DNA of 32,000 nt from Wallemia ichthyophaga EXF-994 (Eukaryota; Fungi; Basidiomycota). Below, in pieces: positions 6,434 through 32,000 of this stretch. The stretch's first letter is position 1. Every line of letters begins with the position of its first letter. A program made the translations under genes and the position numbers. The notes beneath the pieces were generated by a model that was given only the letters and a program-made list of their open reading frames with translations, had not been told where the DNA came from and ran no database searches. The stretch covers positions 60,001 to 92,000 of the forward strand of contig NW_008806281.1 of NCBI RefSeq assembly GCF_000400465.1, in the 5' to 3' direction.

Positions 6434-6539
6434 TGGTAGCGTTTCAGCGTGTTAGCGCGTCTGAGCAAATAACACGTCTAATTATTTAATTCCTTTGTTG
6501 TATTGTAGCTGTAAATGATAAGCTTATCGGTTGACGGTC

Positions 6540-9698: not shown

Positions 9699-9724
9699 AA
9701 ATCCATTCATTTGATGCGCATATT

Positions 9725-10437
9725 TCACAGCGCTATCCCACCTTCGACTGCGTAATAGCCTTCTGGTGTTGTGGTTCCGACTGCGGCAATTTCGATGCGC
9801 TCAAAAGGGTATGGACCACCAATGTTCAAATCTCCGAGAGACTTTTGCACGCTGCTGTAGGAAAAATTTGGCCTCTTCAGCTTCTTCTGCGTGCTTGATG
9901 TTTTTAGAATTGTGCAATGCAACTAGGAGATAGATTAGATGTTTTGTATTTCGATTAGTTGACCCACAGTAGGCGGACCTGTATCGCTAAGCAAACCCTC
10001 TTCTCTGAATTTCTTCCTCACAATCCCCGACACTATGTCTAGAATACCGTTCTCAGACGGCCTATAGTAGAGGACGCGTGCATTATCCTCATTAGGGAAG
10101 CATCCCAGATTGTTCATATGTATAAGGTTGTTATGTGATAGCAATTTGATGATGTCGGGTTTGAGCGAATCAAGCAGAGCGATCGCCGTGGGTATGGTGG
10201 TTTCAGATAAGCGCAACAGTCCTAATGTGAAGTGAAGCTTAGTCGATTTTACGAAGTCCTCCTCTTTGATGCCGTCTATCTCGACTTGGATAAGTTTCGC
10301 TCGTATCTGGTTGAGACGTGGCCGAATGGATGTCAATCTGGTCTATTGTCTTGTTACATAGGTGCACCGATACACCAACTACCTACCAACGGTACGCTTA
10401 TAAAATGAGTAGGCTTCAGATCTTTACTTTGGGGCAT
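9725..10437 (-). CDS. AKAP7/ASCC1-type 2H phosphoesterase domain protein; exons 10437-10387, 10342-9968, 9922-9725
   Basis: Predicted splicing (introns 10386-10343 and 9967-9923) gives MPQSKDLKPTHFISVPL...KLHFTLGLL...LHCTILKT. These are the two HxT motifs of the 2H fold plus the PTHF.S.PL start typical of the AKAP7 domain. Confidence 0.78.
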
Positions 10438-10752
10438 GAGGAGTGACGGAAATAACTTAGAATTAGGCTGGATTTGTGATTATATAGGACAGTTTCCTCA
10501 ATTTTTTGGAATCAGCTCACGCTCTTTGCTGACTGCTTCCTTTTCGTCGGAAGTCTACCGGAAACTTCCGTAAATGTATAATAAATTAAGAAGTATGTAA
10601 TATGCATTTGATAGTAAGGCAGCGTTAATTTTGTAGCTTTAAAAAATGTCCATATTAAATTTGAAAGAGGAACCATAACTGGCTGAAAAATTGAGCAATA
10701 TGTATTCAAATATTTTTGTTTTTAATTGAGTGTTTCTCGCTACGGTTATCAA

Positions 10753-10825
10753 GCCTTGCTAGCTCAATCGGTAGAGCGTGTGACTCTTAATCACAAGGCT
10801 GCGGGTTCGAGCCCCGCGTGGGGCT
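10753..10825 (+). tRNA. tRNA-Lys (anticodon CTT), no intron
   Basis: 73-nt cloverleaf GCCTTGC-TA-GCTC...GAGC-G-TGTGA-CT[CTT]AA-TCACA-AGGCT-GCGGG-TTCGAGC-CCCGC-GTGGGGC-T. A T5 Pol III terminator follows 4 nt later. Confidence 0.95.
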
Positions 10826-11014
10826 AATATTTTTGCAGTCCACAAAATTATCGGAAAACATTCAATATGATATATTCAAGGCAGCCTATGTTATTTATAG
10901 TCAAAAAAAGTTATTTTTAGAGTGATGATATTTGCTTAATTAGTAGTCCAACTCAGACTACGCTACGTTTGATCATGATGAATGACTCTTGATTAAGGCC
11001 GTGATCTTTAAGAA

Positions 11015-12946
11015 ATGATAAATGAAATTCCCGAGGAAACAATTAAAGCGAGAAAGCACGAGCTAATGCAAAGATTACTTCTACATCATAAGAGTCTGTT
11101 CAGTTGCCGTCAGTGCAGTCATTTCAATTGCATAACGTTCAACCGCAATCCTCGTCTGTCGCCATCTCACGGAGCCTTTCTCTGCTCTTGCATGTATATT
11201 CGCGATGATTGCCAATGCTTAAGTTTTCAAGACGTCGATGTATTGCTTCAGAAGGCAGAGAGGATGGGACTAATCTCAGTGCCGCGAAATGTGAGTACAG
11301 GGACTATTAGCCTAGTATATTATTTTTTTGACATTGTTTAGGGCATATTCAATGTCCAAAGCAATGGTCAAGCCAGTACTTCGAGAAATGTTATCGATGA
11401 AAGCCAAACAGCGCCACAGTTGCAATTACAGCAGAAAGAAGAGCAACAGCTACAACAGCAACCACAACAACAACCACAAGTACAGACACCATCGCGGGCA
11501 AATGACACGAGCAATCACAGAAGGGACATCCTCAGTATGACAACTCAAAAGATCCCCGATGAATTGAACGCCGCCAACATAAAACGTCTACAAATTACGA
11601 TAGAGAAGGGCATTATTCCAATCGTACAGGATTCGGTTTTGCCTATCATTAAGCGATACGTTCATAAACACGGCGAGAATTATCATTCGCAAGGCAACAC
11701 CTTATTTACAGAAATCTTCACCATAGTAAACGACCTTATCACACCCATGATCCAATCAACGATGGAGAAAGTGAGCGCTCAGCACATTACTCAACTGGTA
11801 TCGAATTCCATCAATACTACGATTTCTACCTGTTATTTGGACAACATCGACTCTAATGGTGTGGATTTCTTACATAATACTCATAAAATGCGCCATCAAA
11901 ATCAATTAAATCAACAAAGTGCGATTAATGCACAAAACAACGGCCTACAGTCAACCTGGTTGAGCAGTACAAGAAGTACCCCCTCTAAGCAGGATCAACG
12001 CAAACGTACTCGCAGAAGTAATGAGAATGATGAGCAGATTGCTGACGCCAATTCGAAACAAAATGATAATGACGAAGTGCACTTTCTCTCACACTCCAAA
12101 AACACATCTCCAATCAGTCAAGAGGTCCTTAAGAGTCTTTCAGATTTCAGAAATCATCTAGAGAAAAACATCAGAAGTAACATAGATATAGTCAAACAAC
12201 AGGAGTTGCACACCAGTAAACTCAAGGAACTCGAACATGTTTCCCGAACCTTGAACATTCGAACCAGTGCTACTCAAGAGTGGCGTAGCCAAACACAAAC
12301 ATGCATAGAGAGGTTGAGCCGAAATGAGCTAAGTATTAAGAATGCATCTAGAGCATTTGATAATATGACAGCTCGAATGGACGCCATGAATCTTCAATTG
12401 ACACAAGTGGATCAGCGTCAGTCGACATTAAGACGCACAGATTCCAATCAAGCGCAAGGTGACACCGAAAATTTCAAAATAAGTGCCATCGAAAATCTTT
12501 TGGAAAAGATGGGTGAGCGAATAACCTCAATCGAGAATACAAAAGTGGCCATAGGCGGGACGAAGCTGCAGAGCGCCGCAGAAAGCAGAAGCTCGACTCC
12601 TCAGCAGCAAGAAAAAGGGCTGGAGGACAGGCTGATGAAGAAGATTAGCAGTCTAGAGGAAAAGGTGAAGGAAAAGATTATCGAAATCAGACGAGACGCA
12701 AGCCAGCAGCAAGAAGATTTACACAAAAATCTTCTTGAGATGGTGCAAGCGAAGCTTAAGGAGCACTTTGCTGGTATAGACGAATCTAACAGCGGATTTC
12801 AGGACAAGCTGCAATCTCTTCGCGATGAACTGAAAGAATCAATTTTTGAGACGTTTGAGATCCAGAGGGAGAACAGCAGTAAGCAAGAAAGGAGAATAGC
12901 CGATCTTGAAATTGCGCTGAATAAATCATATGAACAAAGCTGGTAA
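11015..12946 (+). CDS. Uncharacterised protein: N-terminal Cys/His cluster, Q-rich linker, long C-terminal coiled coil; exons 11015-11290, 11342-12946
   Basis: A 51-nt intron (11291-11341, GTGAGT...TTAG) joins the 108-aa and 508-aa ORFs in frame. The C-terminal half is heptad-like and E/K/Q/L-rich. I do not recognise a family. Confidence 0.65.
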
Positions 12947-13112
12947 TAGAGGTGGTAACTTCAGAAAGTTGTAATTTTATATTTATGCTTGCTTTTTTGA
13001 AAGAGAGTACGTGGTCTTTTTGGCATGATTGATAGTGACGCGTTTGACATTACAAAACCATATCGTTTTTAACTTTGTGGAAGCAAAAATATTCAAAACT
13101 TTAGTTAGTAAA

Positions 13113-13285: not shown

Positions 13286-14369
13286 AAGTTTGAAAATAAC
13301 CTGAAGGAGATGGAAACCATATTACCCTATCCTTTCGTGCCGTGGGTACCTGCAACACTAAGCTTTTCACAAGCAGAGAATAAGGAACGAGCAAAAGCAG
13401 AGAATATGGAATTATGCAATCAGTACAATATGTCATGGTACATCTACACAGATGGATCTCTAGCTTAGGGGCAAGTTGCGCCAGGCTATGCAGCTAAGCT
13501 TCCACACAGACGAGACTGGTTTAGCTCATCATACAAACGGGGTCCTGACAGCAAATTCACAATTTACGAAGCAGAGTTATTGGGAGTATATCTCGCTTTA
13601 GAATGGATCGAGGAAGAGTTGATACCGCCAGTAGTCTTTATCAATAGCGACAGTCAGGCGGTACTTTCGGAGATCGTTCAATTGCAATCAACAAAGACAG
13701 GCCAATATTTGATAAAACCAGTCCTTGACAAAATTGATTGGATTAAACGAACGAAGGGAAAAAGACTTTGTTGTCCAATTAAACTGGATCCCACGACATG
13801 TGGATATTTACGGTAACGAACTAGCGGACAGAACCGCTAACGAGGGTTGGACACGGCCGACCCACCGGACTATGTGGAGTCAACTAACACTCAAAACTTC
13901 ATACTCTGCAATGCGACGCAGAATGCGCGAGCGCTATACAGCATCCCTAAAAGTAGAAGCCTCCAAAATATCAGACATTAAGTCCAACGCCGCAAAAACA
14001 TCAGCTGGAAGGCTGACAGCAGCAAAAACGGCCAAGATATTCAATGAACTGCCCAGAGCAACGAGATGCCTAGCCACCCAGCTACGGTCAGGGCATTACC
14101 CTACGACTAAGTCTTACCGTTACCGGTTCCGACTGATTGATTCACCTAAATGCCGTGCATGTGGCACAGAGGACAACATCTCCCATAGAATCTTCATATG
14201 CAGAAAACATACAATGACCAGAATCACGTTAAGAAGAAAGATTACCAAGATCAATATTCAGTTCGACTTAGGTCCAATACTCAGAAACGCACACTCTATT
14301 CAAGTCCTTTACGAGTTCTTCAAACCGCAATTAAATACGTACCAAAGATACTTCGGTGGTTCAGTGTAA
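13286..14369 (+). mobile_element. 5'-truncated, inactivated non-LTR retrotransposon (Tad/I-like) ORF2 3' end: RNase H plus CCHC knuckle
   Basis: Reconstructed frame: METILPYPFVPW...YIYTDGSLA*...TIYEAELLGVYLAL...FINSDSQAVL...(+1 frameshift in A5 run at 13759-13763)...LNWIPRHVDIYGNELAD...LATQLRSGH...CRACGTEDNISHRIFIC. In-frame TAG at 13466. No RT or endonuclease domain, poly(A) tail or TSD seen. Confidence 0.88.
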
Positions 14370-15673: not shown

Positions 15674-18600
15674 CTACCAAGCTCTTCCTTGGTTTTTGCG
15701 CTTGTTTCTAAGTTTAAACTTTCTGACATTGTGTCGATCTTGAAGTTGTCGTGATGTTGTATGGGTCGATAGGGCATGTGGAGCTTCTTCGCCATGTTGC
15801 TGTTCTTGCGACTGCTTTTCCTGGCTACGTACCAGTTTTGTCCACATCGTAGCGAATAAACCATTCGAATTGAGAAGCTGAGATTCTGTACCGCTCTCAA
15901 TAACCTTACCGCCTTGAATGTAGAATATCACATCTGACTTGGTGATTGTTGAGATCCTGTTCGAGATAATAATTGTCGTTCTAGTTACGCTCAACTCCGC
16001 AAACAAAGCTTGGATCTCCTTCTCGGTGTCATCATCCAACTCCAAGCTAGTCACATCGAAGCAGAAGATTGGTGCATCTTTCAACAATGCTCTAGCTATG
16101 GCTATACGCAATTTATCACCACCGTTCAATGTGATACCTTCATCACCGATTCTGGTATCGTAGCCGTATTGGAATGAAAGTACCTTGTCGTGTAACTTAG
16201 CAACTTTACAGGCGCTTACGATCTCTTCCTTAGTAGCGCTTTCGTTACCATACTTTAAGTTGAAGGTGAAGGTCTCGTTGAATAATGGGCAAACTTGCGA
16301 GATGATGGCAATGTGTTTTCTGAGTGACTGAAGCTTCATGTCTCTGACATCAATACCATTAATGCTGATAGAACCTTTGCCGACATCGTGGAAGCGATAA
16401 AGCAAGTCTAATATCGTATTATTTCCACTGTCACCGTCACTGAAGAGCGTAATGGTCTTGCCAGTGGGAACTTCAAACGATAAGCCTTGCAGTGCATTGT
16501 CAGAGTCGTAGCTGAAAACGACATTATCGAATTTAATGACAGGTTGGCGAGTATCGAACGTGATGGCGTCAGGCTTATCAGAAACAAAGCTAAACCAGTC
16601 AAGTGACTCGATCAAAAAATTACCACCGAAGACAGAAACACCGTTGAAAATACTATCAAACTTGGAAGGGTACTCGACATCTGGCTGTGACTGGTCCTGT
16701 TTAGAAGATTCTGACAAGTCTATAAGCCTTCTGACACAATCTGTAATGCTAACAAACTCACCGTTACGGGCTTCGGTCTCTGCCTGCTTTGGATCACCTG
16801 GAGGACCATCTGACTCGTCAGATGAGGAAGAATCATCTGAAATATTTTTGACGGTTTTGTCAGAATCGCTGTCGTTATCCTCATCTTGAAGGTTCGTCCC
16901 TTCACCCTCTAGCAACTTAGGACGGCGTTGAGGAGAATTCGACGAGTCAGAAGAAGAATCATCTGAAGCATTCTTAATGGTCCTGTCTGAATCGCTGTCT
17001 TCTTCATCTTCCAACGGCCCTTCGACGTCATCACCTAAATGCTTCAGGTTGGCTTGCACATCAGACGTTGATGACCCAAGTAAAACATCACTGTAAGTAC
17101 TCCAACGCGTTCCAACTTGATCATTTACGACCTGATGATCTTGGGAAGGTCCTGAGAAATGAATAAGCTTTTAGTCAATCCAGAAAAAGCAAAAGAACAT
17201 ACCCTTTGGGTCTTTGCCGCCAATATGCTTCTCCTGGCTACGTACCAGTTTTGTCCACATCGTAGCGAATAAACCATTCGAATTGAGAAGCTGAGATTCT
17301 GTACCGCTCTCAATAACCTTACCGCCTTGAATGTAGAATATCACATCTGACTTGGTGATTGTTGAGATCCTGTTCGAGATAATAATTGTCGTTCTAGTTA
17401 CGCTCAACTCCGCAAACAAAGCTTGGATCTCCTTCTCGGTGTCATCATCCAACTCCAAGCTAGTCACATCGAAGCAGAAGATTGGTGCATCTTTCAACAA
17501 TGCTCTAGCTATGGCTATACGCAATTTATCACCACCGTTCAATGTGATACCTTCATCACCGATTCTGGTATCGTAGCCGTATTGGAATGAAAGTACCTTG
17601 TCGTGTAACTTAGCAACTTTACAGGCGCTTACGATCTCTTCCTTAGTAGCGCTTTCGTTACCATACTTTAAGTTGAAGGTGAAGGTCTCGTTGAATAATG
17701 GGCAAACTTGCGAGATGATGGCAATGTGTTTTCTGAGTGACTGAAGCTTCATGTCTCTGACATCAATACCATTAATGCTGATAGAACCTTTGCCGACATC
17801 GTGGAAGCGATAAAGCAAGTCTAATATCGTATTATTTCCACTGTCACCGTCACTGAAGAGCGTAATGGTCTTGCCAGTGGGAACTTCAAACGATAAGCCT
17901 TGCAGTGCATTGTCAGAGTCGTAGCTGAAAACGACATTATCGAATTTAATGACAGGTTGGCGAGTATCGAACGTGATGGCGTCAGGCTTATCAGAAACAA
18001 AGCTAAACCAGTCAAGTGACTCGATCAAAAAATTACCACCGAAGACAGAAACACCGTTGAATATACTACCATAATGACCAGGAAGCTCGAAAAGTGGTTG
18101 TTTCACGTCCAGGTTTGGCAGATGAACCCTCTTGAAAGACCAGTCAATCTTGCCATGGTCCTCACGAGGTTGCTTGACGTCTGGTTGCTTCACATCGACG
18201 TGTGGCTGATCAACCTTTTTGAAGTTCCCGTCAACCTTGCCATGGTCCTCACGAGATTGCTTGACGTCTGGTTGCTTCACATCGACGTGTGGCTGATCAA
18301 CCTTTTTGAAGTTCCCGTCAACCTTGCCATGGTCCTCACGAGATTGCTTGACGTCTGGTTGCTTCACATCGACGTGTGGCTGATCAACCTTTTTGAAGTT
18401 CCCGTCAACCTTGCCATGGTCCTCACGAGATTGCTTGACGTCTGGTTGCTTCACATCGACGTGTGGCTGATCAACCTTTTTGAAGTTCCCGTCAACCTTG
18501 CCATGGTCCTCACGAGATTGCTTGACGTCTGGTTGCTTCACATCGACGTGTGGCTGATCAACCTTTTTGAAGTTCCCGTCAACCTTGCCATGGTCCTCAC

Positions 18601-21600
18601 GAGATTGCTTGACGTCTGGTTGCTTCACATCGACGTGTGGCTGATCAACCTTTTTGAAGTTCCCGTCAACCTTGCCATGGTCCTCACGAGATTGCTTGAC
18701 GTCTGGTTGCTTCACATCGACGTGTGGCTGATCAACCTTTTTGAAGTTCCCGTCAACCTTGCCATGGTCCTCACGAGATTGCTTGACGTCTGGTTGCTTC
18801 ACATCGACGTGTGGCTGATCAACCTTTTTGAAGTTCCCGTCAACCTTGCCATGGTCCTCACGAGATTGCTTGACGTCTGGTTGCTTCACATCGACGTGTG
18901 GCTGATCAACCTTTTTGAAGTTCCCGTCAACCTTGCCATGGTCCTCACGAGATTGCTTGACGTCTGGTTGCTTCACATCGACGTGTGGCTGATCAACCTT
19001 TTTGAAGTTCCCGTCAACCTTGCCATGGTCCTCACGAGATTGCTTGACGTCTGGTTGCTTCACATCGACGTGTGGCTGATCAACCTTTTTGAAGTTCCCG
19101 TCAACCTTGCCATGGTCCTCACGAGATTGCTTGACGTCTGGTTGCTTCTTGTCGACCTTAGGAGATTCTAAAACGTCTATAAGCTTGGTTGAGAATTTCA
19201 AACTATAATTAAACTCACCATCAACCTTGCCATGGTCCTCACGAGGTTGCTTGACGTCTGGTTGCTTCACATCGACGTGTGGCTGGTCAACCTTTTTGTA
19301 GTTCACGTCAACCTTGCCATGGTCCTCACGCGATTGCTTGACGTTTGGTTGCTTCTTGTCGACCTTCGACTTGTCTTCTGTACCACCTACCAGCTTTGTC
19401 CACATCCTAGCGAATAAACCATTCGAATTGAGAAGCTGAGATTCTGTACCGCTCTCAATAACCTTACCGCCTTGAATGTAGAATATCACATCTGACTTGG
19501 TGATTGTTGAGATCCTGTTCGAGATAATAATTGTCGTTCTAGTTACGCTCAACTCCGCAAACAAAGCTTGGATCTCCTTCTCGGTGTCATCATCCAACTC
19601 CAAGCTAGTCACATCGAAGCAGAAGATTGGTGCATCTTTCAACAATGCTCTAGCTATGGCTATACGCAATTTATCACCACCGTTCAATGTGATACCTTCA
19701 TCACCGATTCTGGTATCGTAGCCGTATTGGAATGAAAGTACCTTGTCGTGTAACTTAGCAACTTTACAGGCGCTTACGATCTCTTCCTTAGTAGCGCTTT
19801 CGTTACCATACTTTAAGTTGAAGGTGAAGGTCTCGTTGAATAATGGGCAAACTTGCGAGATGATGGCAATGTGTTTTCTGAGTGACTGAAGCTTCATGTC
19901 TCTGACATCAATACCATTAATGCTGATAGAACCTTTGCCGACATCGTGGAAGCGATAAAGCAAGTCTAATATCGTATTATTTCCACTGTCACCGTCACTG
20001 AAGAGCGTAATGGTCTTGCCAGTGGGAACTTCAAACGATAAGCCTTGCAGTGCATTGTCAGAGTCGTAGCTGAAAACGACATTATCGAATTTAATGACAG
20101 GTTGGCGAGTATCGAACGTGATGGCGTCAGGCTTATCAGAAACAAAGCTAAACCAGTCAAGTGACTCGATCAAAAAATTACCACCGAAGACAGAAACACC
20201 GTTGAATATACTACCATAATGACCAGGAAGCTCGAAAAGTGGTTGTTTCACGTCCAGGTTTGGCAGATGAACCCTCTTGAAAGACCAGTCAATCTTGCCA
20301 TGGTCCTCACGAGATTGCTTGACGTCTGGTTGCTTCACATCGACGTGTGGCTGATCAACCTTTTTGTAGTTCACGTCAACCTTGCCATGGTCCTCACGCG
20401 ATTGCTTGACGTCTGGTTGCTTCACATCGACGTGTGGCTGATCAACCTTTTTGTAGTTCACGTCAACCTTGCCATGGTCCTCACGCGATTGCTTGACGTC
20501 TGGTTGCTTCACATCGACGTGTGGCTGATCAACCTTTTTGTAGTTCACGTCAACCTTGCCATGGTCCTCACGCGATTGCTTGACGTCTGGTTGCTTCACA
20601 TCGACGTGTGGCTGATCAACCTTTTTGTAGTTCACGTCAACCTTGCCATGGTCCTCACGCGATTGCTTGACGTCTGGTTGCTTCACATCGACGTGTGGCT
20701 GATCAACCTTTTTGTAGTTCACGTCAACCTTGCCATGGTCCTCACGCGATTGCTTGACGTCTGGTTGCTTCACATCGACGTGTGGCTGATCAACCTTTTT
20801 GTAGTTCACGTCAACCTTGCCATGGTCCTCACGCGATTGCTTGACGTTTGGTTGCTTCTTGTCGACCTTCGACTTGTCTTCTGTACCACCTACCAGCTTT
20901 GTCCACATCCTAGCGAATAAACCATTCGAATTGAGAAGCTGAGATTCTGTACCGCTCTCAATAACCTTACCGCCTTGAATGTAGAATATCACATCTGACT
21001 TGGTGATTGTTGAGATCCTGTTCGAGATAATAATTGTCGTTCTAGTTACGCTCAACTCCGCAAACAAAGCTTGGATCTCCTTCTCGGTGTCATCATCCAA
21101 CTCCAAGCTAGTCACATCGAAGCAGAAGATTGGTGCATCTTTCAACAATGCTCTAGCTATGGCTATACGCAATTTATCACCACCGTTCAATGTGATACCT
21201 TCATCACCGATTCTGGTATCGTAGCCGTATTGGAATGAAAGTACCTTGTCGTGTAACTTAGCAACTTTACAGGCGCTTACGATCTCTTCCTTAGTAGCGC
21301 TTTCGTTACCATACTTTAAGTTGAAGGTGAAGGTCTCGTTGAATAATGGGCAAACTTGCGAGATGATGGCAATGTGTTTTCTGAGTGACTGAAGCTTCAT
21401 GTCTCTGACATCAATACCATTAATGCTGATAGAACCTTTGCCGACATCGTGGAAGCGATAAAGCAAGTCTAATATCGTATTATTTCCACTGTCACCGTCA
21501 CTGAAGAGCGTAATGGTCTTGCCAGTGGGAACTTCAAACGATAAGCCTTGCAGTGCATTGTCAGAGTCGTAGCTGAAAACGACATTATCGAATTTAATGA

Positions 21601-24600
21601 CAGGTTGGCGAGTATCGAACGTGATGGCGTCAGGCTTATCAGAAACAAAGCTAAACCAGTCAAGTGACTCGATCAAAAAATTACCACCGAAGACAGAAAC
21701 ACCGTTGAATATACTACCATAATGACCAGGAAGCTCGAAAAGTGGTTGTTTCACGTCCAGGTTTGGCAGATGAACCCTCTTGAAAGACCAGTCAATCTTG
21801 CCATGGTCCTCACGAGGTTGCTTGACGTCTGGTTGCTTCACATCGACGTGTGGCTGATCAACCTTTTTGAAGTTCCCGTCAACCTTGCCATGGTCCTCAC
21901 GAGATTGCTTGACGTCTGGTTGCTTCACATCGACGTGTGGCTGATCAACCTTTTTGAAGTTCCCGTCAACCTTGCCATGGTCCTCACGAGATTGCTTGAC
22001 GTCTGGTTGCTTCACATCGACGTGTGGCTGATCAACCTTTTTGAAGTTCCCGTCAACCTTGCCATGGTCCTCACGAGATTGCTTGACGTCTGGTTGCTTC
22101 ACATCGACGTGTGGCTGATCAACCTTTTTGAAGTTCCCGTCAACCTTGCCATGGTCCTCACGAGATTGCTTGACGTCTGGTTGCTTCACATCGACGTGTG
22201 GCTGATCAACCTTTTTGAAGTTCCCGTCAACCTTGCCATGGTCCTCACGAGATTGCTTGACGTCTGGTTGCTTCACATCGACGTGTGGCTGATCAACCTT
22301 TTTGAAGTTCCCGTCAACCTTGCCATGGTCCTCACGAGATTGCTTGACGTCTGGTTGCTTCACATCGACGTGTGGCTGATCAACCTTTTTGAAGTTCCCG
22401 TCAACCTTGCCATGGTCCTCACGAGATTGCTTGACGTCTGGTTGCTTCACATCGACGTGTGGCTGATCAACCTTTTTGAAGTTCCCGTCAACCTTGCCAT
22501 GGTCCTCACGAGATTGCTTGACGTCTGGTTGCTTCACATCGACGTGTGGCTGATCAACCTTTTTGAAGTTCCCGTCAACCTTGCCATGGTCCTCACGAGA
22601 TTGCTTGACGTCTGGTTGCTTCACATCGACGTGTGGCTGATCAACCTTTTTGAAGTTCCCGTCAACCTTGCCATGGTCCTCACGAGATTGCTTGACGTCT
22701 GGTTGCTTCACATCGACGTGTGGCTGATCAACCTTTTTGAAGTTCCCGTCAACCTTGCCATGGTCCTCACGAGATTGCTTGACGTCTGGTTGCTTCTTGT
22801 CGACCTTAGGAGATTCTAAAACGTCTATAAGCTTGGTTGAGAATTTCAAACTATAATCAAACTCACCATCAATCTTGCCAGTGACTTTGCCATTGTAGGT
22901 GCGTTTGTATTCCCTGTAGTCTCTGTCAGCAGGCTGCTTCCCCTTTTCATCGACCTTTTCCTGGTGACGCTGGGTGGGTTTGCGTGTGTCTTTTTCTTCA
23001 TCATCATCTTCATCTGATCCTGAGTCTGAATCTGACGATGAATGGTCGTCCTCGTTACCTTTCTTAGCGCAGGTGCATTTCTTGCTTGTGCACTTGCCGC
23101 AATTGGAGCATCTCGAGCACTTAACGCCACTGCAGTAGCTGCAGTCCTTGAGGAGCTTAGGAAGATGATCGCCATCTTCAGTCTCACCCTCTACCTGTTT
23201 CTTCCACATGGTCGCAAACATGCCGTTAAGGCTGAGAAGGTGAGAGTGCGAACCGCTCTCAACGACGCGACCGTCCTGCACAAAGAGGATGAGGTCGGAT
23301 TTAGCGATAGTGGAGAGTCTATGAGCGATAATGATAGTAGTGCGACCCTGACTGAGCTCGTTGAATGCAGCCTGGATCTCGCGCTCTGTATTAGTATCGA
23401 GAGCCGACGTAGCCTCATCTAGACACAGTATAGGAGCGTCTTTGAGGAGAGCGCGTGCTATTGCAATGCGCTGTTTCTCCCCACCACTCAATCTTACGCC
23501 TCGCTCACCGACGCGCGTATCGTACCCGTCTTGGAAGGAGAGAATGCGCTCGTGCATCTGCGCCGCTTTCGCAGCCGATACTATCTCCGCATCTGTAGCA
23601 TCATCCTTGCCGTATTTCAAATTAAACGCGATGGATTCGTTGAAGAGGGCGCAATCTTGCGGTATGATGGCTATGAGACGACGTAGAGCATGTTGCTGCA
23701 TATCGCGCAAGTCTACCCCGTTGATAGTGATAGAACCCGCGTCGACGTCGTAGAAGCGGTAGAGAAGACGCAGAATAGTGCTTTTACCACTACCACTTTC
23801 ACCCACCAGAGCAACTGTCTGACCTGTAGGCACTTGGAACGACAAGTTATCGAGTGCGTATCCAGAACTATCATACCTGAACCCAACCCTATCGAATTTG
23901 ATGAGTGGTTGACGAGTGTGGAAAGCTACTGCGTTAGGCTTGTCGTTGATATCAGTGTGCTCGCTAAGCAGTTGCATTAGCTTCTCACTATCAACTAGAC
24001 TCGTATTAATCGAACGGTAAATCATCCCGAGATTGTTCAAAGGCACGTATAGCTGCTGGAGGAAAGTTAAGAACACTACCAGCTCTGCTGCATCAGATCG
24101 TCCTTGCGCTACTCCCGCACAAACCACTGCCGTACCCGCTGCTATACCCGAGACAATAATAACGTTCTGTGCCATGTTCAAAAGATACAGCGACGCTATC
24201 ACCTTTTTCTCCACCGCTTGGAAATTCTTGAAAGCGGTAGTGTAGCGACTGATTTCATGCGCTTCGGCTGTGAAATACTTGATCGTGTCGTAGTTGAGCA
24301 ATGCGTCCGTGTAGATCGCCCTTGTTATATTGTCCTTAGCGACGTAGTCGCGACGCTGCGCTGTGCGCCAGCGTGTGATAAGCACCGATATATACCCATA
24401 GAGGAACATGACAGACGCGATGATGAGCGACAACACCCCACCGAATTTGAAATAGAAGTAGCCGAGAGCGACACAGATATCGGCGACAGTGGGGAAGATA
24501 GAAAATAGAAGCATTTGGAAGAAGTTGTTCAAAGCTTGCCCCTTGTCGAGAATACGCAGAATCTCACCAGTCTTCCTGTGCGTGTGGAACGCCAGGCTAA

Positions 24601-25715
24601 GATTGAGGAGATGGGTGAAACAGTGAGTAGACATGTTCCGGTCTGTCCACTGTGTTATAGGAATCCAAGCGATGTTCTGGACTACTTGCAAAAGGCCTCC
24701 GGAGCCTTGGAAGAATCGAAGAGCGATATAAATGATCAAGTGCTTCCAAGGCGAGGAGTAGGAAGAGAGGTCTTCGACAACTTTACCCAACTGAATTGGA
24801 ACGAGAAGGTTGATATATCTACCGACAAGTAACAAAACAAGACAGAAGAAGGCAAGTGTTTGTAGGCGTGGTGAACCACGTGGCCAAAGGACATCACCGA
24901 GTTGATACATACGTTTCATGAACGCACCCATGCCAGCAGAAGGAGATTTGTCCTTTGCGTCGTGCGTAGCATCGTCACTAGTTGTGTCAGTTGTGTCAGT
25001 TGTGTCTTCGCTGGTTGCACCGTACTGTATAGAGTCGTTGAGCAAGGGAGAGTTCTCACCAGGCGCAGCATTGCCATGGCTGTCATACCTGACGAAGGTA
25101 GTAGTAACACCGCAAACAAGCAACGCACTTCCAATAGCAAGACATATGACGCGTAATGACTGAATCGCGATGTGTGCATATTCAATTGCAGGGAGATGCT
25201 TTGTATCTGTTCGAGTGAGATTGAGTACTAGAAACCAAAATAAACCCACCAGAATAAAATTTAAGATAGTCAATCCACGTAATAAGAAGACTCAATTCGA
25301 GGATTACCGATATAATGTAGAAAGATTGGACATAAGAGCAGATATTTTTATTTTTCTGGACCGCGTAGGCAATGGCAAGGGAACCAAAAGCATATGCTGC
25401 AGAAGCACCGATGCAATGCACGACGAGTGCCAGCCAGTGCTCGTATATGACTGGATTGCGATAAACAGATTTGAAGATAAAAAAGTGTAAAAAAGACGCG
25501 AGTAAATCAGCAAAGTAGGTAAATAGTACAGATTGCGTAATTACGAATAACCACACACGTCTGTATCTCTTTCGAGATGGCTGTGGATCTGGGGGGGAGA
25601 TATACACTCTAGCGAGACCAAATAAGACGACGGCATTGAGTAGAATAGGAATAGCATAGCGGGTAATTAGGATAACTTGCGGTGCAGCGCGCAATCCGAT
25701 TGCAATTACTGCCAT
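15674..25715 (-). CDS. HMT1: Giant HMT1/ABCB6-type half ABC transporter (~3315 aa predicted) with a C-terminal extension of repeat arrays and four degenerate NBDs; exons 25715-25250, 25206-17203, 17151-15674
   Basis: Hydrophobic N-terminal TMD0 and an ABCB6/HMT1-type TMD (RYINLLVPIQLG, LRFFQG.GGLL, FHTHRKTGEILRILDKG, DALLNYDTIKYF, QQLYVPLNNLG). Intact NBD with GESGSGKST, LSGGEKQ, LDEATSALD and IAHRLST. Introns 25249-25207 (GTGGGT...CAG) and 17202-17152 (GTATGT...GACTAA...CAG) both splice in frame; summed exons are 9948 nt = 3316 codons. Confidence 0.88.
15839..16589 (-). repeat. Degenerate ABC NBD copy 4
   Basis: Matches copy 3 at a 1413-bp offset, including the ATMWTKLVRSQEK end. It is preceded by an acidic linker instead of an 87-bp array. 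Confidence 0.92.
17252..18002 (-). repeat. Degenerate ABC NBD copy 3
   Basis: Matches copy 1 at a 3648-bp offset but ends in ATMWTKLVRSQEK. Confidence 0.92.
18143..19360 (-). repeat. One B-type unit, a duplicated pre-array linker, and 87-bp array A2 (11 full units)
   Basis: The A2 block matches A1 at a 3648-bp offset and gives the same 365-aa shadow ORF. It is preceded by one DVNYKK unit and the linker DGEFNYSLKFSTKLIDVLESPKVDKK. Confidence 0.93.
19397..20147 (-). repeat. Degenerate ABC NBD copy 2
   Basis: Appears identical by eye to copy 1 at a 1503-bp offset. Confidence 0.92.
20291..20860 (-). repeat. 87-bp coding tandem array B: 6 full units of variant DVNYKKVDQPHVDVKQPDVKQSREDHGKV
   Basis: Same period with array-specific substitutions (GN-F to VN-Y; mostly TCG rather than TCT Ser codon). 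Shadow ORF 233 aa = 24 + 6x29 + 35. Confidence 0.95.
20900..21650 (-). repeat. Degenerate ABC NBD copy 1
   Basis: Walker A reads SDGDSGNNT, signature LNGGD, Walker B FCFDVTS and H-loop ISNRIS. Ends in ARMWTKLVGG. Confidence 0.92.
21791..22800 (-). repeat. 87-bp coding tandem array A1: 11 full units of DGNFKKVDQPHVDVKQPDVKQSREDHGKV
   Basis: 87-nt period read from the sequence. Unit count from the antisense shadow ORF: 365 aa = 24 + 11x29 + 22. Confidence 0.95.
23070..23146 (-). other. 8-Cys cluster directly after the active NBD (CSYCSGVKCSRCSNCGKCTSKKCTC)
   Basis: Read directly from the long ORF: CxxC-x4-CxxCxxCxxC-x4-CxC, followed by an acidic DDHSSSDSDSGSDEDDDEE run. Confidence 0.85.
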
Positions 25716-25739: not shown

Positions 25740-27414
25740 ATGATGACATCAAAACAGGCATTTAATCTTTTTAATAAGGTACCTCGGCAAGTGACACAGT
25801 CTTATGATGTCCTGATTGTTGGCGGTGGGCCTGTTGGATTGGCGTTGGCTTCGTCACTGGGATCGTGTGCCGATCTCAAAGCACTCAAAATTGGATTAAT
25901 CGAAGCGAATTCGCTGGATGGCGTGAGAAATTGGAATGGAAATGAACTCCCAGCGTATTCGAATAGGTGTTCGTCGATTAGTGCTTCAAATTACGTGTAT
26001 TTCCAGCGTGAGTTGAGTTTGACAAGTGGAGGTTGTGACAGCTGAAGAAGATGCAGGCACAGGTGGTTTAAACACTCTTAATACATGCCGTGTTTCTCCA
26101 GTCAACAATATGCAGGTCTGGGATGGCAGGACTGATGCCAGGATCACATTTGGCAGGCAGCTCGACGACGAAGACTACGGAGCACTCGCAAAGGACAGCA
26201 GCACGCTTTCGTATATGATGGAAAATACAAATCTGCAAAAATCATTCCTCGATCATATTGACAGGTCGACGTCTATTGACATACTCGACTCGGCAAAGAT
26301 TAGATATATAGATCGTGATAATGAGTGGCCCAGGGTTAATTTAGAAAACGGAGATAGCCTACGTACACGGCTCATAATTGGTGCAGACGGGTTCAACTCA
26401 CCTGTACGGAAATTCTCCGAAATCGAAGCAGTGGGATGGTCATACAACGCAGCAGGATTTGTTTCGACATTAGAAACACAACCATCTCATAACGCATCAC
26501 ATTCATCACAAACAGCGTTTCAAAGATTTTTGCCAACAGGACCGATCGCTTATCTGCCGTTACCGGGCTCAGCAGCGTCAATGGTGTGGTCAACAACACC
26601 TGAGCTTGCGAACAAGTTCAAACAGGCTGACATAAGAGTGCTTGGGTTACTTATCAATGCTGCGTTCAGATTTAGAGAGGATATACTTGCAACACTTTAC
26701 AATAACGTAAATCTCGACTATGATAGCTTTTTACTGCTAGTGAAGCAGCTTGAGAGTGCACAAGGAATTGATATGACTACCTCGCGACAGATTAGTAACG
26801 GAGTAGCTGATGGGATACCACCAAGTGATCATGAAGGGTTTCCACCGTTAGTGACATCAGTAGTGGATGGATCGCAGGCATCATTCCCACTGAAACTAAA
26901 TCATACTGATGGATATGATGGGAATAGAGCAGTATTGGTAGGAGACGCGGCTCACAGCTGTCACCCACTTGCAGGACAAGGGTTGAATTTAGGGATGGGA
27001 GATGTGCAATCACTCACGTCAGTACTAGCAGAGGGCCAAAGATTAGGGGGAGATATAGGAAGCAAGACGATATTGGAGAGGTATACGAGGGATCGCTATG
27101 TAGTAAATCTAACCATGCTTATGATGACAGATAAGTTAAATGCGTTGTTCCAAGTAAGTGGGGAGAACCCACTGGTGCAGCTGCGTAGTATGGGGTTGGA
27201 GATGATCAATGAGATAGATAGGGTGAAGGAATTCCTTGTGAGACATGCAGGCACAAAGGGCATAGAGAAGGAAGATGGTGATAGTATTATAGCAGATGGA
27301 ATAGAGAGTGTTGGAAAAGCAATAACAATGCTCAGCGCAACAGCAAGACAAGTTGGGAGATTTGGAGAGGGAAAGGTAAACGAAATGATGAATGGAATTG
27401 TAAATAAGAAGTAA
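25740..27414 (+). CDS. COQ6: Ubiquinone biosynthesis FAD-dependent monooxygenase; exons 25740-26007, 26057-27414
   Basis: Motifs YDVLIVGGGPVGLALA, NRCSSIS, MQVWDG, LIIGADGFNSPVRK, AFQRFLPTGPIAYLP and VLVGDAAHSCHPLAGQGLNLG. A 49-nt intron (26008-26056, GTGAGT...CAG) restores the frame. Confidence 0.93.
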
Positions 27415-27476
27415 GAAATAAAAAAATCAAGCATAGGATATGATTTGTGCGATAAAGAGATGATATAGAGTTGAGT

Positions 27477-28010
27477 TTAGAGGGAGTTCATTTGAGCGAT
27501 AACTTCGTCTAATTCACGTTTCATCGAACCCAACTTTTCTTGAGAGTCTTCATACTTTTTCTCCCAGGCATCACGTTCTTGTTCAACGCGCTGTACTTGG
27601 CGTTCAAAGTGCTCAGCTTTGACGTCAACTTGACGGAGTTTTTCAGTGACGTCTTTCAAATTCTTTTCAGAGTTGTCGAGTTCGTCTTCTAAGAGGGCTA
27701 TTTTGCGATGTAAAGCTTCAGCGTTTGTGCGGTGAGCGTCTTCCTCGTCTCTGAAACCTTTCAAGTCATTGAGACGAGATTCGAGGGAATCGTTGTCAGA
27801 TTCAGCGAGACTGAGTTTGTGTTGAAGGGATTGAACTTCTTGTTCCCTTTGAAGGGAATCCTGTTCAAGCTTCTTTACACGTTCCTCAGAAACTTCAGCC
27901 CTTTCAAGGTTGGAATCAGCTTCAATGCGGAGGTTGTTGAGTTTCTGTGTGGGTGTCAGTGTTATATTATTTGTAAATGAACCGATAAAAACCTCTTTAA
28001 TCTTCTCCAT
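27477..28010 (-). CDS. TPM1: Tropomyosin; exons 28010-27993 and 27944-27477 (161 aa spliced)
   Basis: Removing 48 nt (27992-27945, GTTTTT...CAG) gives MEKIKEKLNNLRIEAD..., a continuous coiled coil of 161 aa. That is the length of short fungal tropomyosins such as Cdc8 and Tpm2. Confidence 0.92.
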   Translation of the reverse strand: MEKIKEVFIGSFTNNITLTPTQKLNNLRIEADSNLERAEVSEERVKKLEQDSLQREQEVQSLQHKLSLAESDNDSLESRLNDLKGFRDEEDAHRTNAEALHRKIALLEDELDNSEKNLKDVTEKLRQVDVKAEHFERQVQRVEQERDAWEKKYEDSQEKLGSMKRELDEVIAQMNSL

Positions 28011-28937
28011 TCGTGATGAAATTTGTGGTTTGACGTGTGGTTTGACTTCAAACGTAAGTTTAATTCATCAAAACCCTAAGATGGGTTTCGGGGCGGGTGA
28101 AAAATAAATTCGACCGAGGAAAGAAGCCTAAATGAGCTTTTGTTTCCAATTGAGCGAGGAGAAAATTTTTAACGAAATGTTCATATTCTAGAAAATTTCC
28201 CGAAAATTTTGATCAAGAATGTAAACAGGTATGAATGCATTATGTAGATATTACACAGTTTTACACCGGTTTACGCCTTTGTTCGACTCCTGGGAAGAAA
28301 TGAGGCTAACGTGGAGAAACGGCTCGGATGGCGACTAGGTGCAGCCACAAGTACTTAGATAATAGAGGTTAATTGTGCAGGAAAGCCAATTTGTTGTCTA
28401 GGCTCACTATAACGAATGGCTTCAAATGCTCAATTCGAAGAAATGGTCGCTATGATGAACAGGGAGCGTGAAAAGGAGAAGAAGAAGCTGTTTTACGCCG
28501 AAGATGTAGCTAAGATCAGCAAAAGGACCAAAAACGCATTAAAAAATACAAGGAGAAGACAGAAACTGCCATAAAAAACGATTGGGGATTTCTCGTCAAT
28601 CCCAAACAACGCAAGGAGGATGCCACACCCTTGGCATCAGTAAAATATATGTCCAAGACGAAGCTATAATGCTTATGGATTTGCGTCCCAACTCCCTCAA
28701 CACGCGTCAAGTAAGTTACGTAATTCAATTGCAATGTCTGACGTGTGGCAGATGGTCTCGGCTCTTTCAAAAGAGGGAATAGAGAAGGCGAAAGCTCACT
28801 ACGATGGAATAACCTGCTTCAACACGAGTATTGAAAAGAAATTTGACTTGATATCAATTCCCAATTTTTTACTTTAAAGTTTATTCGAAGTCTTCTTCCT
28901 TGTATATTACAATACATATTTACTTGTGTCATTCCAT

Positions 28938-30040
28938 TTATACTGTACCTCTGCGCTTCACTGGTGAATGAGACATCCTAGCCTTGGAAACTTGTTCTGC
29001 CTGCGAAGGTCTCTTATTTACATTACTACCCCTAACTCCTCTCTTTGCTGGCATTCCCTTCCCTCCCTCATTGGTGTCCTTCAGCTTTGCCATCTTCACC
29101 CTTCCTGCAGCCCTCTGCTGTGCCTCTACTGTGCCTCTACTGTGCCTCTACTGCTTGGTTTGCGGAGCTTGTAGGTTTTGATGGGTTTGTAGTGTTTGCT
29201 GTGTTTGCATTGTTTACAGTGCTTCTACTGTTATCATTCCTATCGCCCTTTCCTCTAGCACCGGCAAACGAAAATGGCCTTGGCGTTGGCGGTGCTTACT
29301 GCACCTTCTTATGTTTTTTCACAATTCTCGTCTTTACTATACCTTCTTCGCCGCCTCCAGAGCTACTCAATTCCTTTGCATTAGTTGTACTACTACTACC
29401 TCCACCGAATATCTTCTTGCCTACACTCTTGATCATCCAAGCGGCCTTGCTAGCAGTTGCGACTCGAGTTGGTGGTTTCCCGCCTCCGATAATCCTACCA
29501 AGTGGTCTTCCTCTAGTGTTAGCTGTCATACTTAACCGTCTCTTCTGTCTCGACACCTCTAATCTACGCTTGATATCATCTCTACGCTCCTTTTCATTTA
29601 AAGGTACAGTCCCCTTGATTCTCTTGTTAGGTTGGCTTGGTTCTGCTACAGATGATCTAGCTTTAGCTTCCTTCTGCGTAAAACCCTCGTCTTGAGCAGA
29701 TGAGGTGGGTTAAGTAGGCTGTGTCGTTTGCCTAGATTGTTCAGACTTCGATGGACTTGCCTTGCCCTTGGTCTATGCTCTCGGCTGACCTGGCTTCTTG
29801 GGGGAAACCTTAGGTTTGGCTGCATAGTGATCGGCTATACTGCCCATCTTCTTAAATTAATTCTTATGTGCATAATCGAATTTCCTCTTTATCTTGAGAT
29901 TCGTGTTTATTTTGATATTCGTGGTACTGTTCAATCCTAACTGCGCTGCACTCTTTGATGATCTACTCGTCTCTGATTGCGCTTCAAATTTAGGCTTGAC
30001 TTCGGCAGTTGGCAGACGTCTGTTCAGTTCATTCATAATG
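28938..30040 (-). pseudogene. Disrupted K/R/S-rich low-complexity gene of unknown family
   Basis: Protein-like frame EKERRDDIKRRLEVSRQKRRLSMTANTRGRPLGRIIGGG...SPVKRRGTV*, interrupted by in-frame TAA codons (about 29710 and 29296) and a frameshift at an 11-bp repeat. The 5' boundary is uncertain. Confidence 0.5.
29112..29154. repeat. 11-bp tandem repeat (CCTCTACTGTG), about 4 copies
   Basis: cctctgctgtg-cctctactgtg-cctctactgtg-cctctactgc, read directly. Confidence 0.9.
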
Positions 30041-30404
30041 GATGTAAAACCTGCAATTGAAACACCTGACTGCTATCCAAACACGAATTGTGGCAGTGGT
30101 GGGTACACCTTAATTGATGCGCTTTCACTTGAGCCGTTGCTATTGTTAATTCCAGACAGACTTGGTCTGTTTACGAACCAAGGTTATGGCGATGGCGGTT
30201 TATTGTCATTGCTGACTAGTTTAACGGTATCGTCAATGATTTTGAAGAAAGAGAATTGACACGACACGTCTGTAAGATGTTAAAATGTAAAATAGAAAAT
30301 AACATGTATATAAATATCAATAAACAATAGATTTACTTAAAATAAAATAAAAATAAAAATAAAATGACAATCAATTAAGATACCTTTATCAAGTACATTC
30401 ATCA

Positions 30405-32000
30405 ATGAATAATAATGAAATTGGTAGATTGCTTCAACAACAACAACAGCAGCAATTTAATCAATTAAATCCACAACAGAGGCAGCAGGTGGGTTATTTG
30501 TTATATTAATTTAATTGCTCTGATTAGTGGATTTCCTTATAGGCGATGATTGCAACTCAAATGAGTAGAATGCAGCAGCAGCAGCAGCCCCAAGGACAAC
30601 CTCAACAAACACAAAATCATCCTCAGGACCTTAACCAATCACCTTCCCTTGAACAAGCATTTCAATCAAACAACCTCCACTTCCTAATCGACGCTGCAAA
30701 ATTAAATAAATTAAATAACGATAACCTTCAAAGATTACAGAGGCTTATTAGAAATTCTCAACTTGAGCATATTCAACGGGGCGGTGGACAGGGTGCCGGT
30801 GGTGGCCAGCAAGTTAGACAGCAACCACAGCAACAGCCACAACAACAACAACCTCAACAACCCCAGCAACACCCTCAGCAACCACCACAACATCCGCACC
30901 TAGTCCCCTCCCAAATAGCTGCCGCTAAGAACCTCCAACAGAAAATAGAAACCATCGATTTACAATTGAGAAATTCAAATTTATCCCCACAAGACCGAGA
31001 TAACGCTAGAAAGTCTTATGATGAAGCTAAAAATTTACAAGCTTTGTTTATTCAACAGCTTAGGAGTAATCAATCGACTAAACAATCAACCAATATGTTA
31101 CACTCTCAATCTCAGCCACAAGTTACAACCAACTACGATAACAACTGGGCTAATCAACACCAATTTCCCAGTCTCTCAAATAACTTTTCCGGCGATCATC
31201 ACTCAAACATCCTTGGTCTTGGTTTGGTTGGTACTTCAAATCCTCCACAGCAGCAACAACCTCCACAACAACCTCCACAACAACCTACACCCACTCACCA
31301 ACCTCCCACTCAACCCCGCCCAAACCTCTCCATGCTCCCTCAACTTCAACCCGAAAATTTTCTCAAAGCCCTTATCGATCTCATGAAGAAGCGTGGCACT
31401 CCTATTGAAAAACTACCTGAAGTTGATGGTAAAGGTATTGATTTACACAAACTCTACATGACTGTCATCCAATCTGGTGGCAGCTTGGAAGTTCATCGTC
31501 AATCAAAGTGGCCACTAGTTGGTGCAATCATCGGTTTACCAATGTCTAATCAATTCTCAGACTCTAATCCACGTATCTCTAACAACTCCTCCCAAGCTTT
31601 AGCAAACGTTTACAGAGAATACCTCGCTCCATTTGAACAAGTGTGGATGAAAGCTATTCATGATCAAGTCTCACAGAGAAGAGCCGCTGTCATGCATCAA
31701 CAACAATCACAACAACCACAACAATCACCTCTAACTAGACCAATGACTGGTTTCCCTCAACCAATTCCTCAACAATTCCCTCAACAATCTCAACCCCCCC
31801 AACCCCAACCTAATCAACCTCAACCTAATCCACCTCAGCCTAATCAGCCCATCCATCAACAACAACTAATGGCTTCTCTCTCATCAATGTCTGATGATCA
31901 GTTGAGAAATTTAAACTTGACTCCTGAGCAAATTTTTCAGCTTCGCAGAAAGATCCAACAACCACAAATGTCTACCACTGCGCCGTCTTTGGATGCCACC
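30405..32000 (+). CDS. Q/P-rich ARID-domain protein (Swi1/ARID1-like); 3'-partial; exons 30405-30488, 30543 to window end
   Basis: A 54-nt intron (30489-30542, GTGGGT...TAG), then a frame open to the window end. ARID pattern FLKALIDLMKKRGTPIEKLPEVDGKGIDLHKLYMTVIQSGG...KWPLVGAIIG...LANVYREYLAPFE. It is absent from the ORF track, probably because no stop lies in the window. Confidence 0.85.

Follow-up and report, generated by a model that had tools for sequence, protein, structure and literature searches.

The heavy metal tolerance gene examined here, from the salt-loving fungus Wallemia ichthyophaga EXF-994, encodes a transporter whose C-terminal tail contains serial copies of a nucleotide-binding domain (NBD) with degenerate catalytic motifs. 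The gene lies on the minus strand (25715-15674) of a 32,000-nucleotide stretch of DNA (the window; record KE007231.1). As judged by its sequence, it encodes an HMT1/ABCB6-type half-transporter belonging to the superfamily known as ATP-binding cassette (ABC), with an intact core made up of an N-terminal extension (TMD0), a transmembrane domain (TMD) and an active NBD. Roughly 2490 residues follow the active NBD and comprise a Cys cluster, 33 repeat units and four dead NBD copies, referred to below as pseudo-NBDs. This serial pseudo-NBD tail elaborates a known transporter family in a single lineage, and the architecture appears unique to W. ichthyophaga as far as the searched libraries show. We favor a reading, to which we give an even chance of being right, in which an HMT1-type core carries an old duplicated and later amplified dead-NBD tail that would serve as a noncatalytic regulatory or scaffold appendage by a mechanism that we infer.

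Gene model and transporter core

Three minus-strand open reading frames (ORFs) cover the gene: 25715-25182 (177 aa), 25273-17171 (2700 aa, uninterrupted) and 17059-15674 (461 aa). The second, with its 2700 codons, is much longer than chance would allow. Removal of two canonical short introns joins the exons into a coding sequence of 9948 nt, or 3315 codons, with a single stop at its end, and the first splice, after ...KFYS, agrees with a strain gene model (P0121) and with the reference model (P0250). The latter is the deposited 3298-aa protein, 'Heavy metal tolerance protein [Wallemia ichthyophaga EXF-994]' (EOR01095.1 / XP_009267886.1 / UniRef R9AG37), and equals our spliced model minus one more in-frame 51-nt intron (16761-16711). 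Its genomic position is stated as KE007231.1:65,674-95,715, that is, window coordinates + 50,000. By protein search, the transporter core is 99-100% identical to W. ichthyophaga proteins. The public model was predicted with GeneMark-ES and has been available since 2013, so that the architecture is deposited but undiscussed: literature searches by accession, by product name with Wallemia and for pseudo-NBD found no publication naming the gene, and it is not discussed in the genome paper and its supplements (PMC3849046) or in the population paper (PMC6738226).

Pfam detected one ABC_membrane and five ABC_tran domains, all in one reading frame. In protein order, TMD0, TMD and the intact NBD are followed by an 8-Cys cluster, an acidic run, repeat array A and pseudo-NBD 1, and then by array B, pseudo-NBD 2, one B unit, array C, pseudo-NBD 3, an acidic linker, pseudo-NBD 4 and a basic tail. 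A sequence-only reading made earlier of this DNA had proposed one spliced ORF with this domain order, and the ORFs, introns, Pfam domains and repeats detected by Tandem Repeats Finder (TRF) bear this out. The tail-unique peptide that it named, SDGDSGNNTILDLLYR, is present in the spliced protein.

Several traits place the core in the HMT1/ABCB6 subfamily. A TMD0 region is found likewise in orthologues, and these carry the names HMT1/ABCB6 in protein searches. Among solved structures, the TMD matched human ABCB6 best (E 1e-67), ahead of Atm1/ABCB7 (1e-45 to 1e-38), and the first NBD appears catalytically competent, with the motifs GESGSGKST, PQD, LSGGEKQR, LDEATSALD and AHRLST and 80% identity to the NBDs of two Wallemia-like orthologues, P0122 (907 aa) and P0123 (886 aa). 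The HMT1/ABCB6 assignment made in the sequence-only reading was thus upheld by the Pfam domains, the TMD0 and ABCB6 as the best solved match of the TMD. Like the S. pombe, C. elegans and human members HMT1, HMT-1 and ABCB6, the protein has a five-helix TMD0, a six-helix exporter TMD and one intact NBD. It departs from the half-transporter rule of one NBD per polypeptide: described HMT1/ABCB6 members have no NBD beyond the first, whereas the W. ichthyophaga gene adds four dead ones, noncatalytic by sequence, for a total of five ABC_tran matches. The HMT1/ABCB6 family detoxifies cadmium, and a structure of ABCB6 with Cd-phytochelatin bound is available (PMC11143254; 8YR4). In C. elegans HMT-1, the C-terminal region matters for self-interaction (PMC6077975). 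From family membership, the W. ichthyophaga core should use ATP to export thiol-metal complexes into an endomembrane compartment.

Pseudo-NBDs, repeat arrays and other tail segments

Motif alignment revealed that the pseudo-NBDs have lost the residues required of an ABC ATPase, as the sequence-only reading had claimed for all four extra NBDs. Walker A reads SDGDSGNNT versus GESGSGKST in the active NBD, with both the Lys and the Ser/Thr replaced, and the signature reads LNGGDKLR versus LSGGEKQR. The Walker B/D-loop is FDVTSLELD versus LDEATSALD (DV for DE), such that the catalytic Glu is lost, and the H-loop is SNR versus AHR, with loss of the His. The Q-loop Gln is retained. On these motifs the pseudo-NBDs are predicted to be incapable of ATPase activity, and they should not bind ATP.

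Outside the catalytic motifs the domain is well preserved. The pseudo-NBD shares 62% of its residues with the active NBD, 67% with that of P0122 and 63% with that of P0123, and its single length difference from the active NBD is one codon. Among 188 sites invariant in the three active Wallemia NBDs, 138 (73%) are kept in the pseudo-NBD, and the 50 changed sites cluster at Walker A, the signature, the Walker B/D-loop and the H-loop. In an AlphaFold2 model that ran from the last A unit through pseudo-NBD 1 into the first B units, per-residue confidence (pLDDT) was mostly above 90 in the NBD core and below 50 in the repeats and in the remnant of the pre-NBD linker. The best Foldseek match of the pseudo-NBD model was the human ABCB6 NBD 3NHA (TM score 0.89 on target). 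Collectively, modeling and structural matching predict that the pseudo-NBD keeps the RecA-like plus helical subdomain fold of ABC ATPases.

Formal comparison of nonsynonymous and synonymous rates (dN/dS) was unusable because dS was saturated for most pairs, and branch lengths by codon position were used instead. From three-point branch lengths, the pseudo-NBD branch carried 0.17 substitutions per site at codon positions 1+2 versus 0.40-0.50 at position 3, and the active-copy branch 0.11 versus 0.87-0.97. When neutral substitution was simulated at 0.25-0.5 per site, only 0.05-0.5% of simulations left the 249 codons stop-free. These values point to constraint on the pseudo-NBD that is real but relaxed. 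Part of it, the absence of stops and the restriction to in-frame changes, is explained by a polybasic C-terminus that must stay in frame. The sequence-only reading had taken a frame open across about 7.5 kb of duplicated DNA as a sign of a translated module. As argued, this did not stand. An open frame across 7.5 kb is a weak argument because the copies are identical and have had no time to decay, so that far less independent sequence is involved; it is weakened again because a short-read assembly with K=21 would make copies identical anyway. The claim of coding constraint on the tail survives on other evidence, namely a pseudo-NBD that is 38% diverged without a stop and its unequal codon-position rates.

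The pseudo-NBDs are separated by arrays of a repeat that TRF delimited at 21743-22796 (12.1 copies), 20288-20858 (6.6 copies) and 18095-19148 (12.1 copies), with a period of 87 bp. Earlier counts of 11, 6 and 1+11 units hold if the divergent unit that terminates each array is not included. Twenty of the internal 87-nt units agree with one another in every base, and a further five make up a second identical set; in composition, the unit is about 20% acidic, 21% basic and 7% His. On a larger scale, 17240-19232 matches 20888-22880 at 99.75%. Plus-strand ORFs at 18074-19171, 20219-20920 and 21722-22819 (233-365 aa) were rejected as genes, being the antisense of the stop-free 87-bp repeat.

Homologous in-frame 51-nt segments of the form GTGAGT...AG occur three times (22866-22816, 19218-19168 and 16761-16711), and all four introns or intron-like segments of the tail are phase 1. 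The first is spliced out in strain models P0246, P0247 and P0249 and retained in P0121 and P0250. Public annotations are inconsistent on these segments generally: some strain models remove them and the reference removes the one at 16761-16711, but they are translated elsewhere as GEFDYSLKFSTKLIDVL.

Two further segments are set apart by composition. The Cys cluster has eight Cys within 25 residues with CxxC and CxC spacing and no match to any Pfam family, metallothioneins included, and was identical across all strain proteins read. The acidic linker (~180 aa) carries an ancestral tail motif twice, as RTIKNASDDSSSDSSNSPQRRPK and KTVKNISDDSSSSDES, the counterpart in the P0122 tail being ...RIVKIASNDSSNSSSSQPPKR. 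The protein closes with a basic tail of 53 aa whose end is homologous to the ends of P0122 (...NKHRNKRKTKGTIW) and P0123, in a Wallemia pattern ...RNKRKxxGxxW that occurs in the window protein at its extreme end only. Because this conserved polybasic C-terminus lies beyond the insert, the whole insert must stay in frame. A hydropathy scan found no hydrophobic segment above threshold beyond aa 600, so the tail is predicted to be soluble. Coordinates of all features are collected in Table 1.

Table 1. Features of the transporter gene in window coordinates, listed from the N-terminus to the C-terminus of the protein
Feature	Coordinates	Strand	Basis
Exon 1: start codon at 25715 and most of TMD0	25250..25715	-	ORF and DNA
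TMD0, N-terminal extension, five hydrophobic segments in aa 14-193	25073..25715	-	Kyte-Doolittle scan
Intron 1, 43 nt, GT..AG	25207..25249	-	Junction same in P0121 and P0250
Core transmembrane domain, six-helix, ABC_membrane, PF00664	23993..24877	-	Pfam E 1.6e-32
Active NBD, intact Walker A, Q-loop, signature, Walker B and H-loop	23198..23944	-	Pfam and motifs
Cys cluster, 8 Cys within CSYCSGVKCSRCSNCGKCTSKKCTC, metallothionein-like by pattern only	23060..23149	-	Sequence
Acidic Ser/Asp/Glu run	22988..23059	-	Sequence, composition
In-frame intron-like segment, 51 nt, GTGAGT...TTTTAG; GEFDYSLKFSTKLIDVL if retained	22816..22866	-	DNA, strain models
Array A: 11 units of 87 nt / 29 aa (VDVKQPDVKQSREDHGKVDGNFKKVDQPH) and one divergent terminal unit	21761..22804	-	TRF, unit list
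Pseudo-NBD 1, with diverged remnant of pre-NBD linker	20897..21742	-	Pfam ABC_tran, motif losses, AlphaFold2, fold match
Array B: 6 VNYKKV-type units and terminal unit	20258..20866	-	TRF, unit list
Pseudo-NBD 2	19394..20239	-	Pfam, repeat comparison
One B-type unit, truncated unit, intron-like segment 19218-19168, array C (11 A-type units and terminal unit)	18113..19363	-	TRF, unit list
Pseudo-NBD 3	17249..18094	-	Pfam, repeat comparison
Acidic linker, net charge -23, with intron-like segment 16761-16711	16658..17248	-	Sequence, composition
Intron 2, 51 nt, GTATGT...TGACTAA...CAG, phase 1	17152..17202	-	Junction same in reference model P0250
Pseudo-NBD 4	15836..16657	-	Pfam ABC_tran E 1.8e-14, repeat comparison
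C-terminal tail, polybasic end ...KFKLRNKRKNQGRAW, and stop codon	15674..15835	-	DNA

Distribution and origin of the tail

To gauge how widespread the architecture is, we searched 1.84 billion protein representatives exhaustively with HMMER, using the pseudo-NBD as query, and inspected the top matches. Four or more NBD stretches were present in none of these representatives; a protein of that kind would have led the ranking by summed score. The best single-NBD match was the Wallemia HMT1 cluster at 60% identity. A word-indexed protein search with the pseudo-NBD returned nothing above 43% identity, in part because the 3298-aa reference protein sits inside the cluster represented by P0121. In 119 basidiomycete orthologues, neither a second H-loop nor a Cys-rich tail was present (0/119), and the Cys cluster is absent from P0122 and P0123 as well. 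The sequence-only reading had called this beads-on-a-string arrangement of pseudo-NBDs rare and had suggested looking for extra NBDs in related HMT1 orthologues. The rarity was confirmed by the 1.84-billion search and the 119 orthologues, and no extra NBD was found in P0122, P0123 or the 119.

The closest relatives indicate what the ancestral C-terminus may have looked like. Similar to the W. ichthyophaga protein, P0122 and P0123 have a core (80-83% identical) and a polybasic ...RNKRKxxGxxW end, and they share upstream synteny (a flavin adenine dinucleotide [FAD] monooxygenase and a tropomyosin). Unlike it, they are encoded by a single ORF with one NBD plus about 65 residues, and have no repeats, Cys cluster or pseudo-NBD. 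More distant basidiomycete orthologues, such as the Hypsizygus marmoreus 'Heavy metal tolerance protein' and Sanghuangporus HMT1, have a core 50-57% identical, an acidic tail and a polybasic end. Their tails after the NBD are almost all acidic and of low complexity (median 235 aa, maximum 388) and close with a stretch rich in Ser and a KKKEKKEKKRK-type polybasic cluster, which occurs in nearly all basidiomycete orthologues listed; in contrast to the W. ichthyophaga tail, they lack NBDs and the Cys cluster and have different, VAFPSS-type repeats. Among orthologues P0125-P0240, the acidic disordered tail spans 200-390 aa, often with repeated (P)VAFPSS motifs. Thus, a long disordered tail with a polybasic end appears to be the family norm in basidiomycetes. 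To our knowledge, this conserved tail of basidiomycete HMT1/ABCB6 proteins is uncharacterized. The length of 800-900 aa that had been quoted earlier for HMT1/ABCB6 proteins does not hold for basidiomycete orthologues, which are about 1100 aa long with their extended acidic tails.

Comparison of the copies suggests two episodes of duplication. The pseudo-NBD is an old paralogue of the active NBD, which makes the first duplication old. By contrast with this early event, the amplification is, or at least looks, recent: all four pseudo-NBD cores agree completely (100%) over nt 6-804 and vary at the edges only (99.5-100% identity overall). The last pseudo-NBD and the tail are colinear with the ancestral C-terminus. 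Given the recurring 51-nt segment and the ancestral tail motif, the duplicated unit would therefore have been genomic DNA spanning the pre-NBD linker, NBD and tail. Informative sites among four taxa split 5:4:2, a ratio that does not place the duplication relative to Wallemia speciation. Recent transfer or gene conversion from a P0122-like lineage was considered and rejected, as exact runs were <=12 nt and identity was uniform at 58-87%. At third codon positions compared with P0122 (15836-16657 versus L002:4001-6724), the pseudo-NBD was nearer to that orthologue (p = 0.468) than was the active NBD of the same genome (0.578); GC was lower in the pseudo-NBD (0.43) than in the active NBD (0.51).

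We propose an ancient tandem duplication of an NBD-plus-tail segment in the lineage of W. ichthyophaga, after which the downstream copy lost ATP binding and catalysis while staying folded under relaxed purifying selection. Later unequal crossing-over between the 87-bp coding repeats could have brought the repeat-plus-pseudo-NBD module to at least four copies, and the 8-Cys cluster would have arisen beside the active NBD.

Locus structure, rival explanations and role of the tail

For the reference assembly of 2013, SOAPdenovo was run at K=21 on Illumina libraries of 500 bp and 2 kb; the assemblies of other strains were made from PE150 reads. Ten other strain assemblies yielded 'partial' proteins that all stop inside the first array, the contig of strain SPOE ending 12 bp past the partial gene. 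All strain contigs read pass in frame from the active NBD over the Cys cluster and acidic run to the repeats, and this junction is thus confirmed across the species. Strain contigs end in the first array or before the 3' flank, and in none of them was the pseudo-NBD confirmed independently. The acidic linker and tail, searched as part of a chimeric query, matched no other protein, and neither the degenerate Walker A DNA nor the 87-bp unit turned up in metagenome scans (0 matches). The 3' neighbor gene was recovered in two strains, whose contigs diverge from the reference at 13215 (L005) and 13425 (L006), short of the transporter, and then continue for 119 nt of unrelated sequence to the contig end.

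It is possible, though well short of even chance in our estimate, that the reference is partly an assembly artifact, with the same kinds of pieces present in other numbers or order and the identity of copies produced by collapse and gap filling. The K=21 short-read method, the 20 plus five identical units and the four cores identical over 800 bp are all in keeping with this, as are the break of ten other strain assemblies in the first array and first SPOE units that are nearer the reference B type than the A type. Unit counts are unreliable for the same reason, short-read K=21 data and identical units. Against an artifact, the window DNA is without any N, and distinct junctions and single-nucleotide variants require four passes through the core. 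There are four core entries, two A-terminal (QPRE...KIDWSF), one B-terminal (QSRE...KIDWSF) and one from the acidic linker, and four exits, of which two are GGTEDKSK followed by B units (with a T/C difference and different continuations), one is RSQEKHIGG followed by the intron and linker, and one is RSQEKQSQEQQ followed by the stop. Two A arrays must exist because their start contexts differ (GEFDYSL after the Cys linker, GEFNYSL after the B unit), and the distinct entries and exits form a balanced path needing at least four pseudo-NBDs. Four would thus be the minimum if the junctions are real, with the order of the middle segments and all unit counts uncertain. An assembler cannot invent a diverged pseudo-NBD, and an artifact touches mainly counts and order, not existence. 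We consider it highly improbable that the tail lies outside the transporter gene as decaying NBD pseudogene copies or a separate downstream gene. Orthologues do end soon after the NBD and the pseudo-NBDs are without catalytic motifs, but the 2490 codons after the active NBD are stop-free, the family polybasic C-terminus lies at the far end only, the pseudo-NBD shows coding constraint, and strain contigs run in frame from the active NBD into the Cys cluster and repeats. Another scenario that we judge unlikely is module skipping, in which splicing from an upstream donor to a downstream acceptor removes whole modules in frame and the main protein is shorter, for example, core plus one pseudo-NBD plus polybasic end. 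Such skipping could preserve the frame because all four introns or intron-like segments of the tail (the three homologous GTGAGT...AG segments and intron 17202-17152) are phase 1, and annotators disagree on their splicing. However, introns of the W. ichthyophaga genome average 61-68 nt, which fits separate removal and makes multi-kilobase skipping unlikely, skips of 3.6-6 kb being far outside this range.

The main and serious rival holds that the tail is tolerated baggage, its repeats and pseudo-NBDs translated but functionless and its frame held by the downstream polybasic C-terminus. Missense constraint on the pseudo-NBD would then reflect selection against misfolding of a fused domain, and the arrays would be unstable coding minisatellites. 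We regard this as a substantial minority possibility. The polybasic motif is conserved in basidiomycete orthologues and sits at the extreme end here, the family normally has long disordered tails, array units vary between strains, and the tail is absent from other Wallemia-like orthologues. Constraint is also relaxed, the ratio of positions 1+2 to position 3 being about 0.35-0.4 versus 0.12 in the active copy. On the other hand, the pseudo-NBD has stayed recognizable and confidently foldable over a divergence comparable to that between Wallemia species, its substitutions gather at ATP and dimer-interface motifs with the core kept, and amplification to at least four copies has persisted. Both baggage and a functional appendage are compatible with the results here. 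Several points weigh against the appendage that we favor. Codon-position asymmetry in the pseudo-NBD is about three-fold weaker than in the active copy, with third positions near saturation, and folding selection or C-terminus frame-keeping alone would explain the data without a tail function. AlphaFold2 confidence for the pseudo-NBD rests on an alignment of active NBDs, and the gene model that includes the tail is a GeneMark-ES prediction. With short reads assembled at K=21, the number of identical 87-bp units cannot be established and identical 800-bp cores cannot be distinguished; no other strain assembly crosses the locus, all ending in the first array or before the 3' flank; and the first SPOE units differ from the reference, with 96.6% identity to B-type versus 94.8% to A-type units.

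Under the preferred interpretation of a noncatalytic appendage, the tail would be a large cytosolic structure of folded, catalytically dead NBD beads on disordered polyampholyte tethers. It may act by steric or competitive modulation of NBD dimerization or as a multivalent scaffold, and would not be an extra ATPase. The Cys cluster might serve as a local metal-binding site. Among the roles put forward for the tail in the sequence-only reading were those of a dominant-negative partner of the active NBD, a nucleotide or metal sensor, and a metal buffer. A more specific proposal, which we think rather improbable, is that an array of decoy NBDs on disordered springs, together with a metal-binding Cys cluster, responds to metal or ionic conditions in the cytosol by tuning the dimerization or ATPase cycling of the active NBD or by clustering transporters. 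If true, the protein would be the first example of regulation of an ABC transporter in cis by serial pseudo-NBDs.

Known systems offer partial parallels. Asymmetric ABC exporters, heterodimeric or full-length, such as TAP1/2, CFTR, MRP1, TM287/288 and Pdr5, keep a degenerate NBD as a structural and regulatory partner. These domains lack the catalytic Glu, H-loop His and signature residues, keep the Walker A Lys and bind ATP, and each is coupled to its own TMD, one per transporter. The pseudo-NBDs differ from these degenerate-site NBDs in having lost both Lys and Ser of Walker A, in having no attached TMD, and in occurring at least four in series. Cytosolic metal binding is a property of P1B-type ATPase tails, such as the Cys/His-rich C-termini of plant HMA2/HMA4, and of fungal metallothioneins. 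The P1B-type tails, like the W. ichthyophaga protein, place a dense CxC/CxxC cluster beside the motor domain of a metal transporter; the P1B-type ATPases, however, belong to a different transporter superfamily, and the W. ichthyophaga cluster is metallothionein-like by pattern only.

If confirmed, the W. ichthyophaga protein would be the only known ABC transporter with serial dead NBDs fused behind an active NBD. It would represent a natural experiment in the generation of pseudo-enzyme domains by intragenic tandem duplication and in the possible regulation of an ABC motor by decoy NBDs, and would illustrate how an insert of great length can be kept in frame by a conserved signal at the C-terminus. 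The 2013 short-read reference holds a striking, undiscussed gene model whose module counts are not trustworthy until the locus is re-sequenced.

The flanks of the window (1-13000 and 26000-32000) contain ordinary housekeeping genes and no metal-related gene cluster around the transporter. Encoded there are a HEAT-repeat protein, an arrestin-like protein, aldose 1-epimerase, a PINIT plus zf-MIZ SUMO ligase, NRDE-2, an AKAP7-like protein, a coiled-coil protein, the FAD monooxygenase and tropomyosin. Between 13200 and 15650, an unannotated ORF (13725-14369, plus strand) without a Pfam match has an RNase H-like motif by eye (NWIPRHVDIYGNELADRTANEG), and this interval, just downstream of the transporter gene, is probably a retroelement remnant or an insertion polymorphism.

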